Virus record (IMG/VR): IMGVR_UViG_3300031857_000002
Coordinates: 248,001 to 312,000 of that record
Length of the DNA stretch: 64,000 nt
Reading direction: 5' to 3' (one strand)
The notes beneath the pieces are model-generated. The model did no database searches and was not told where the DNA came from. It saw nothing but the letters and a program-made list of their open reading frames with translations. Of the stretch, positions 22,753 to 39,670 are shown piece by piece. A program made the translations under genes and the position numbers. How positions within the stretch are numbered: the stretch's first letter is position 1; every line of letters starts with the position of its first letter.

Positions 22753-22838
22753 GTTTACTTCATAAAAAAATCCGATCCATGCGTTATTATAGCACGAACC
22801 GGATTATGTGTCAAGTACCCTTACGGAGTACAGGGCAA

Positions 22839-23114
22839 TTACTTCTTAGAAGTAGTAGATTGGTAAGCCTTCATGATACCTTCACCAAACTTGGTGTAGT
22901 CAAACTTCATGGCTTCTTGTGAGGCCTTGACCATTTCGCTAGTTAATGTAGCAAATGTATCTGTACCAACTTTGGCAGCTTTCTTTGTGTAAGAGGCTTG
23001 CTCATCAATGAAAGTGTTCATTGCGTCTGCGATTTTTTCGTTTTGGACAAATGTCTTGACAAATTGTTTTTTACCGGTTTGTACGGCGTCGATTGTTGCG
23101 TCTAATGTAAACAT
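22839..23114 (-). CDS. phasin-like amphipathic helical protein
   Basis: 91-aa Ala/Thr/Lys-rich helical protein; AGGAG RBS; PhaR-like palindrome upstream. Confidence 0.55.
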   Translation of the reverse strand: MFTLDATIDAVQTGKKQFVKTFVQNEKIADAMNTFIDEQASYTKKAAKVGTDTFATLTSEMVKASQEAMKFDYTKFGEGIMKAYQSTTSKK

Positions 23115-23120
23115 AATTTT

Positions 23121-23170
23121 CTCCTATTAAGCGAGTTTACTACAGGGCCCGACCTATTCAGCACCCTATG
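23121..23170 (-). promoter_or_regulatory. ROSE-like RNA thermometer candidate
   Basis: CUC-G-CU-UAAU-AGGAG hairpin with bulged G over the SD, plus an upstream hairpin. Confidence 0.45.
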
Positions 23171-23188
23171 TTCTATTGTAACATTATT

Positions 23189-23207
23189 TATGTTGCGGCG
23201 CAACATA
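23189..23207. promoter_or_regulatory. palindromic operator, PhaR-box-like
   Basis: TATGTTGCG-G-CGCAACATA (core TGCGGCGCA) abutting TAAATA at 23185-23190. Confidence 0.55.
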
Positions 23208-23263
23208 TTTTGATATTTTTTCTAGTGAATGGTCACTAATAAATAACTGTATAGGAGAACATT

Positions 23264-23515
23264 ATGTTTACAAAAATCAAAGAATTCTTGTTTGGTAAAG
23301 ACCCGGTACAATCACCTGTGGCGGCACCTTACAAGGTTGATGCACCGGCAGAAGTTGGCAAGCCAGCTGACGATCGAGTTGAAGCACCTGCACCAGTTGC
23401 GGCTGCTAAACCGGCTGTCAAGGCACCTGCCAAGAAAGCACCAGCACCAAAAGCTGAGCCTAAGCCCAAATCACCACCAAAACCGCGAGCTCCTCGAAAG
23501 CCTGCGGCCAAGTAA
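23264..23515 (+). CDS. Ala/Pro/Lys-rich low-complexity protein
   Basis: TAAATA and AGGAG upstream; basic tail. Confidence 0.75.
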   Translation: MFTKIKEFLFGKDPVQSPVAAPYKVDAPAEVGKPADDRVEAPAPVAAAKPAVKAPAKKAPAPKAEPKPKSPPKPRAPRKPAAK

Positions 23516-23540
23516 AAAAACCCCGAAAGGGGCTTTTTTT
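23514..23540. terminator. bidirectional intrinsic terminator
   Basis: A7-CCCC-GAAA-GGGG-C-T7. Confidence 0.8.
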
Positions 23541-24021
23541 ATCTAGTAATCATAGCAAAAGTAAACAGCACGACAGGGACAGCTATTGCCATGAAACTGG
23601 TACCTATGAGTAGTCTATCTATCATGTCGGACTGTGCTTGAATTCTAGCATTTTTTATGTCTGCCTGTAGCTTGGCACGTTCTTTGTACATACGCACACG
23701 TTCAGCCATCATTTCGTCCCATACATCCTTGTTGCCTGACCATATCAACATCTCTTTTAGTTCTTTCTCAGCATCTCGCAGTGCCTTGCTCTGCATGGCA
23801 ATCTGTACAGACATTGCTCTGATCTGCCCGTCGGTGAGAATTTTTTTACTGGTTTGTGCCTCTATGCTGGCAGCGTGAATTGTGTCGCTGTTCTCAAAGA
23901 ACTTGGCAAACTGTCCGTAGAGACTGTTGACATCCTTGCCCAGAGCAATGGCTTTTTTGATATAATTTACCGATTGTTGGGCGGCTGTGAACGCAATGCC
24001 AATTGTGATAGGATCAAGCAT
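23539..24021 (-). CDS. coiled-coil protein with C-terminal TM helix
   Basis: MLDPITIG start; hydrophobic C-terminus. Confidence 0.75.
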   Translation of the reverse strand: MLDPITIGIAFTAAQQSVNYIKKAIALGKDVNSLYGQFAKFFENSDTIHAASIEAQTSKKILTDGQIRAMSVQIAMQSKALRDAEKELKEMLIWSGNKDVWDEMMAERVRMYKERAKLQADIKNARIQAQSDMIDRLLIGTSFMAIAVPVVLFTFAMITR

Positions 24022-39121: not shown

Positions 39122-39580
39122 TTAGGAAGTGTATGTGATAGCAATAGTCTTTGGCTTGGCTTCTTCAGGTATTTCACGCTTTAGGTGAATGCTTAGGATA
39201 CCAAGTTCAAGATGTGCTCCGGTAATTTCCACATGGTCCGCTAGTTGGAATTCTCTACGGAAACTACGCTCACTGATTCCTTTGTGCAGGTATTTTGCAG
39301 TCGAATCTTCATTCTCCACAGTTTCACGACTGTGCTTGCCTTCAATAACCAAGATTTTTTTATCCTTGGTCACTGACAGATTGTCGTAGCCAAAACCAGC
39401 CACAGCCACGCTGATCATGTACTCGTCATCATTGACTTGTACAATATCATAAGGTGGATAGTTTGTTGAGCTTTGTTGAGCATTTACACGCATGAGTTCA
39501 TCAAACATGTTATCAAACCCGATACCAAATTTGGTGAGTGCGGGAATGTCGAAAGAGCGAAGGGTGAGAGTTTTTGTCAT
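39122..39580 (-). CDS. small heat shock protein Hsp20 (IbpA-like)
   Basis: IGFD, NYPPYDI, AVAGF, YLHKGIS.RSF.REF.LA, GILSI.L. Confidence 0.95.
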   Translation of the reverse strand: MTKTLTLRSFDIPALTKFGIGFDNMFDELMRVNAQQSSTNYPPYDIVQVNDDEYMISVAVAGFGYDNLSVTKDKKILVIEGKHSRETVENEDSTAKYLHKGISERSFRREFQLADHVEITGAHLELGILSIHLKREIPEEAKPKTIAITYTS

Positions 39581-39640
39581 TTGTTTTCTCCTTTATTAAG
39601 CAAGATGACTTGTGATGTAGCCCCACTATGGGCACTACAA
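39581..39640 (-). promoter_or_regulatory. ROSE-like RNA thermometer in hsp20 leader
   Basis: UCUU-G-CUU-AAUA-AAGGAGA SD-sequestering hairpin with bulged G, plus upstream hairpin; TTGACA-17-TATAAA at 39646-39674. Confidence 0.6.
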
Positions 39641-39670
39641 ATATATTTATACAGGAAATCTCAACTGTTG

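Follow-up and report, generated by a model that had tools for sequence, protein, structure and literature searches.

The window analysed here, a stretch of 64,000 nucleotides, corresponds to bases 248001-312000 of the 320,175-bp IMG/VR virus record IMGVR_UViG_3300031857_000002, an uncultured freshwater jumbo phage whose genome is estimated to be 92% complete and has a GC content of 44.3%. The window encodes ribonucleotide reductase, DNA ligase, tail proteins and radical-SAM proteins, and no close relative was found among the GenBank phages by megablast and tblastn. Two promoter-like motifs are enriched upstream of the phage genes, a sigma-70 extended -10, TGCTATAAT, and TAAATA, the latter being present in 33 of 143 upstream regions against 3.8 expected and usually located 4-25 nt from the start codon, in some cases so close that the mRNAs would be nearly leaderless. 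We focused on a minus-strand gene for a 91-aa protein, which forms a monocistronic unit closed downstream by a hairpin plus U-run and flanked upstream by a divergent gene for an 83-aa protein. The features of this locus, together with those of a second locus carrying a related leader, are summarized in Table 1.

Table 1. Positions, in the window, of the features described in the text.
Position	Strand	Feature	Remarks
22839-23114	-	CDS, 91 aa, predicted three-helix protein	Start codon ATG at 23114
23115-23169	-	ROSE-like 5' leader	Hairpin 1 at 23142-23169; anti-SD CUCGCU at 23135->23130 with the bulged G at 23132; loop UAAU; SD AGGAG at 23125->23121, followed by 6 nt and the ATG
23175-23183	-	Extended -10, TGT-TACAAT	TACAAT or TATAAT in homologues
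23185-23190	-	TAAATA, phage late-type promoter motif	Lies in the sigma-70 spacer; may act as a second promoter
23190-23206	.	PhaR-box-type operator ATGTTGC-GCC-GCAACAT	Core of the 19-bp palindrome 23189-23207; overlaps the putative -35 and abuts TAAATA
23198-23203	-	Putative -35 hexamer TTGCGC	17 nt upstream of the -10; inferred from the sequence
23208-23222	-	A-rich tract upstream of the -35	Possibly an UP element (inference only); on the plus strand the T-run that makes the palindrome look like a terminator
23223-23238	.	Second palindrome TAGTGA-N4-TCACTA	Extended arms 23218-23243; centred about 32 nt upstream of the PhaR box
22764-22805	-	Terminator hairpin plus U-run	Closes the 91-aa unit
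22814->22786	-	Perfect sigma-70 promoter with TG extension, TTGACA-17-TATAAT	Embedded in the terminator hairpin, with its -10 in the loop
21971-22603		phrog_3704 'ferredoxin' homologue	Presumably among the next genes driven by the embedded promoter
23264-23515	+	Divergent 83-aa gene	Canonical TAAATA-18 nt-ATG arrangement
23513-23541		Bidirectional intrinsic terminator (A-run, GC stem, T-run)	Between convergent genes 23264-23515 (+) and 23539-24021 (-)
23093-23128 and 23238-23272	- and +	Almost identical SD-to-start segments of the two divergent genes	TAGGAGAA-A/C-ATTATGTTTACA; inverted duplication around the intergenic region; both proteins begin MFT
39122-39580	-	HSP20 (IbpA-type) gene of the phage, 152 aa	TTGACA-17-TATAAATA promoter
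39575-39645	-	Second ROSE-like leader, upstream of the HSP20 gene	

An earlier note on this locus, made from the sequence alone, described a 19-bp palindrome abutting a TAAATA element and a leader in which CUC-G-CU faces the AGGAG of the SD, and all of these features were confirmed to be present. The palindrome is a perfect inverted repeat, TATGTTGCG-G-CGCAACATA, of which the last two bases on the minus strand are the first two of TAAATA. A perfect 9/1/9 palindrome is not remarkable on its own, because the phage genome carries 6 of them against 1.2 expected, although the specific pattern TGTTGC-N3-GCAACA is unique in the genome with 0.05 expected. The significance of the palindrome therefore rests on its conservation in homologous loci and on its identity with the operator of the likely host.

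In order to examine this conservation, as the earlier note had suggested, we collected 45 IMG/VR loci carrying the gene, many of them on contigs of 260-350 kb, and aligned the 160 nt upstream of each gene. The protein has 1070 close homologues and 382 clusters at 50% identity, all of them small proteins. The alignment showed a palindrome ATG(T/C)TGC-N3-GCA(A/G)CAT with a free centre, sitting at a fixed place with its centre 83-92 nt from the ATG, together with a highly conserved leader, and 28 of 35 distinct sequences match the core T-N2-TGCR-N-YGCA-N2-A within one mismatch. Among the more distant family members, P0157 (43% identity) keeps the box and P0175 (38%) keeps it with one mismatch, with TAAATA lying 18 nt from the ATG, but the still more distant operonic member P0226 lacks it. 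A -10 hexamer, TACAAT or TATAAT and often with TGn, lies 17 nt downstream of TTGCnn inside the palindrome in essentially all loci. In contrast, TAAATA directly abuts the box in only 15 of 35 loci, lies elsewhere in 5, and is absent in the rest (about 40%), where it is replaced by ATTTATCATATATAAT. At the locus studied here TAAATA is 70 nt from the ATG, unlike most TAAATA boxes of this genome. The proposal of the earlier note that a host operator had been grafted onto a TAAATA promoter is thus half right, since the constant partner is a sigma-70-type promoter, while TAAATA may add late transcription in some lineages and could provide PhaR-independent late transcription.

The second palindrome, with the extended form TTAGTGA-N4-TCACTAA, is unique in the phage genome and is conserved in 17 of 35 homologous loci, 24-38 nt (mode 32.5) upstream of the PhaR box, at about -63 of the sigma-70 promoter and touching the TAAATA box of the divergent gene. 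Its identity as a host operator was rejected for Polynucleobacter, because only 4 sites were found against 18 for the control, and phage factors may act here.

The consensus of the PhaR-binding sequence of Ralstonia eutropha, YTKNTGCRNYGCANMAR, was derived in a 2025 study that noted a single-base centre and near-perfect conservation of positions 1-4 and 7 from the centre (PMC12849132). The phage site agrees with this palindrome at 15 of 17 positions, and in the 29 phage sites within 3 mismatches, positions +/-1 to +/-4 and +/-7 are conserved in 24-29 of 29 while the centre is free. One contig carrying the phage gene (L047 in our numbering of loci) had been binned into a Polynucleobacter MAG (EUL_030), and the Phasin_2 gene of that genome carries TGTTGCGTCGCAACA upstream. 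We then searched 41 Polynucleobacter genomes and found the exact pattern TGTTGC-N3-GCAACA in 31 of them, with 46 sites against 3 for the reversed control. Of 30 sampled sites (L053-L082), 12 lie 13-136 nt upstream of Phasin_2 genes. In an unbiased sample of 17 Phasin_2 genes from five genomes, 10 carry the exact core within 250 nt, often in tandem, against about 0.001 expected per gene, and all four phaR genes examined carry it 31 nt upstream of the ATG, in agreement with the known autoregulation of PhaR. This finding supports the prediction that the palindrome is a PhaR-box-type host operator, of which we are fairly confident, although PhaR binding is inferred from sequence alone.

Two alternative readings of the palindrome were considered. 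First, it may be a hairpin, either an intrinsic terminator read on the plus strand or a DNA/RNA structural element, since on the plus strand an 8-bp stem with a 3-nt loop is followed by TTTTGATATTTTTT and was listed by a terminator scan, and some arm changes are compensated, for example TGCTGC...GCAGCA in one homologous locus (L023). However, no plus-strand gene ends upstream of it, so that it would stop only antisense RNA, and the conservation is base-specific, TGCR-N-YGCA plus T/A at +/-7 with positions +/-5 and +/-6 being freer, which is the published PhaR-box pattern and not a stem-preserving one; the same sequence recurs upstream of host phasin and phaR genes. We rejected this reading as very unlikely. 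Second, the box may be bound by a phage-encoded or other non-PhaR regulator, its resemblance to host phasin operators being convergent or reflecting a different host factor. In Polynucleobacter the exact palindrome also lies near OsmC-like genes, a Crp-family regulator, a 3-hydroxyacyl-CoA dehydrogenase, malonyl-CoA decarboxylase and parA, which may be further members of a Polynucleobacter PhaR regulon or chance sites, and the second palindrome has no host counterpart. On the other hand, the phage genome carries only this one intergenic box in 320 kb, which is unusual for a phage regulator, no PHB_acc_N (PhaR) homologue was found in the phage, and the co-occurrence upstream of both phasin and phaR genes is the signature of PhaR autoregulation. 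This second alternative is considered unlikely.

The leader was compared with Rfam, and the ROSE_3 model (RF02523) aligned over its full length to 23109-23170 (-) with 23.8 bits and an E-value of 0.013, below the gathering score of 43. It was the top Rfam family at the same position also in 6 of 20 homologous loci (24.8-29.6 bits), always over the full model length and ending at the ATG. Hairpin 1 is supported by covariation in 5 of 8 pairs. Neither RNAalifold nor RNAfold at 37 C predicted the SD helix, both preferring the pairing of GUAAAC with GUUUAC of codons 2-3, and we therefore counted the pairs directly. All 35 distinct leaders can form five pairs around a single bulged G, most commonly CUC[G]CU or CUU[G]CU with AGGAG, but also as register-shifted compensated variants, UUU[G]UC with GGAAA and UUC[G]UC with GAGAA, whereas the loop varies in length (4-7 nt) and in sequence. 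The imperfect pairing of U(U/C)GCU with the SD across a bulged G is the defining feature of ROSE elements (PMC11342760).

The relationship with host leaders holds in both directions. ROSE_3 finds in Polynucleobacter the leaders of ibpA-type small heat-shock genes behind sigma-32-like promoters, with 33.5-34.9 bits, also below the gathering score, and a covariance model built only from phage leaders (R1) finds only these ibpA leaders in 41 host genomes, apart from the mis-binned phage contig. Within the phage, R1 also finds the leader of its own HSP20 gene at 28.1 bits; this protein is 37% identical to Polynucleobacter IbpA, and its leader also gives a weak Rfam freshwater-2 hit (22.6 bits). 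The gene downstream of the leader studied here is not a small heat-shock gene, but ROSE-like elements upstream of other gene classes are documented (PMC11342760). The two regulatory modules are separable across the family, because loci L035 and L125 have the box without the leader, L046 has the leader and a TATAAATA box without the PhaR box, and the operonic L124 has neither.

Alternatively, the leader could be not a thermometer but a 5' stabilising hairpin plus a conserved translation-initiation region, or a binding site for a protein or sRNA. The Rfam scores below threshold are compatible with this view, and so is the nearest-neighbour folding, in which the SD unpaired probability rises with temperature in some homologues (for example 0.02 to 0.26) but stays flat at about 0.4-0.5 (0.4-0.47) in the window. 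The SD-to-start segment is also nearly identical in the divergent gene, which lacks the hairpins, so part of the conservation reflects translation signals. However, the U(C/U)GCU element, the bulged G and the pairing are kept in all leaders while the loops vary, the only host relatives are ibpA leaders, the small heat-shock gene of the phage has the same leader type, and ROSE helices rely on non-canonical pairs that energy models do not capture (PMC11342760). We consider it likely that the leader is a ROSE relative, but whether it would work as a thermometer is about an even chance, being inferred from family resemblance, and the non-thermometer alternative as formulated here is judged rather unlikely.

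The phasin assignment of the 91-aa protein is the weak part. Its conserved motifs are an MFT-D--ID-VQ--KK N-terminus, F-DAQ--YTK and KFDY-KFGEG, and an AlphaFold2 model with a 74-sequence alignment predicts three helices (residues 2-22, 26-70 and 73-88) at pLDDT 85. Pfam Phasin_2 (PF09361) scores 15.7 bits against a cut-off of 24.9, and although it is the only recurrent Pfam family, in 7 of 23 and 22 of 74 members with a best E-value of 1.2e-4, it never reaches the cut-off, and no NCBIfam phasin model was passed. The nearest named Atlas clusters are Phasin_2, PHB_acc and PHA_synth_III_E at 0.84-0.87, but scores under 0.9 are leads only. Profile-profile comparison by hhalign with 12 full-length and 19 domain-only Polynucleobacter phasins gave probabilities of 2% and 0.2%, respectively, a PDB sequence profile search, Foldseek against PDB and an Atlas structure search gave nothing informative for a generic three-helix model, and the hydrophobic moment was no higher than in shuffled sequences. 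Among bacterial genomes the only hits were three MAG contigs (L047 in the Polynucleobacter MAG, L048 and L049 in the Haliscomenobacter MAG EUL_031), which are probably mis-binned phage DNA, and thus the family appears to be phage-only. Membership in the phasin family is therefore not established, and a link with PHB granules is suggested mainly by the shared operator.

It is therefore possible, though somewhat less likely than not, that the protein is not a granule-binding phasin but has another role useful when the host stores PHB or is stressed, for example as a holdase-like helper, a PhaR or phasin antagonist, or a phage assembly factor. Besides the absence of a profile-profile or structural link to phasins, this view is supported by the wide distribution and strong conservation of the family, by the leader type shared with a small heat-shock gene, and by the lack of the box in distant members such as L124. 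Against it are the operator shared with host phasin genes, the recurrent Phasin_2 hits, the PHA-related Atlas clusters and the nature of the divergent partner gene, which has no Pfam hit but encodes a conserved amphipathic N-terminus (MFTKIKEFLFGK) and a 63% Ala/Pro/Lys tail with PAKKA-like repeats, resembling the tails of host phasins and of PhaM/PhaF-type proteins. An A/P/K-rich divergent neighbour is present in about 24 of 33 distinct loci.

Taken together, the interpretation of the earlier note, that a phasin-like phage gene senses host carbon storage and temperature and coats or mobilises PHB granules, is supported only in part: the PhaR-like operator and, as a structural and sequence relative, the ROSE-like leader are supported, but the phasin-like, granule-coating protein is not shown. 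In the model that we favour with moderate confidence, the phage infects a PHB-storing member of the Burkholderiales such as Polynucleobacter, an assignment that rests on motif sharing, the GC content (44.3% in the phage and 44.6% in the host loci) and the binned MAG contig, and the control region copies two circuits that the host keeps on separate genes. Host PhaR would sit over the -35 and next to TAAATA and block transcription while the cell has no free PHB surface, and would leave when nascent granules titrate it, as at host phasin promoters. The ROSE-type leader would then hold back translation in the cold and favour it upon warming, stress or other helix-opening conditions, and the product most likely acts at the PHB granule surface or on PHB-linked physiology, in a phasin-like or chaperone-like way, although a granule-surface role remains tentative. 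What the analysis itself establishes is the sequence features, their conservation and their identity with host operator and leader types, while PhaR binding and its release by PHB, promoter activity, thermosensing, the host, and the role of the protein, including granule binding, are inferred.

PHB is the main carbon and energy reserve of many freshwater and soil bacteria, and how phages deal with it or exploit it is essentially unknown. The locus offers a concrete and cheap test case of whether phages sense host storage status and temperature, a host-prediction signal based on shared operators and leaders, and a new small protein family (at least 382 clusters at 50% identity) of candidates for granule binding, while the same data define, as read from sequence, the PhaR box of Polynucleobacter, an abundant lake bacterium. 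A literature search found no report of a phage-encoded phasin or of phage use of PhaR, nor of an RNA leader of the heat-shock type in a phage. As a more far-reaching and tentative possibility, a lineage of freshwater jumbo phages may have plugged one of its own genes into the PHB-granule regulon of the host and added an RNA thermometer to the same mRNA, so as to make a granule-directed protein only in carbon-replete, warm or stressed cells; this would be the first phage-encoded player in PHA granule biology, and the first ROSE-type element and PhaR operator reported in a virus. The parts are known, and what is new is their transfer to a phage and their combination on one gene.

The phage site shares with the PhaR operators of phasin (phaP) and phaR promoters in Burkholderiales, as in R. 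eutropha H16 (PMC12849132), a degenerate palindrome with a single central base, the TGCR-N-YGCA core with T/A at +/-7, a location, as predicted from the sequence, at or next to the -35 box, and the expected logic of repression relieved by PHB granules, but it is located in a phage genome in front of a gene that is not a recognisable Phasin_2 member, is single rather than two or three in tandem, and abuts a phage TAAATA late-type box. With the ROSE-like thermometers of ibpA leaders (PMC11342760) the leader shares a 5' hairpin followed by a hairpin with the bulged-G pairing to the SD and ending at the start codon, but hairpin 1 is extended, the SD hairpin is shorter (5 bp with a 4-7 nt loop), and it would control a non-heat-shock gene in a phage of cold or temperate lakes. 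Compared with phasins such as PhaP1 of R. eutropha and those of Polynucleobacter, the protein is likewise small, predicted to be all-helical and apparently PhaR-controlled, but it is half the size (91 aa against about 190) and lacks the A/K-rich tail, a separate A/P/K-rich protein being encoded divergently. Finally, Pho-box-controlled auxiliary genes of cyanophages likewise have a host transcription-factor site in front of a phage auxiliary gene, so that infection responds to host nutrient status, whereas here the signal would be carbon-storage status through PhaR, combined with an RNA leader of the heat-shock type.
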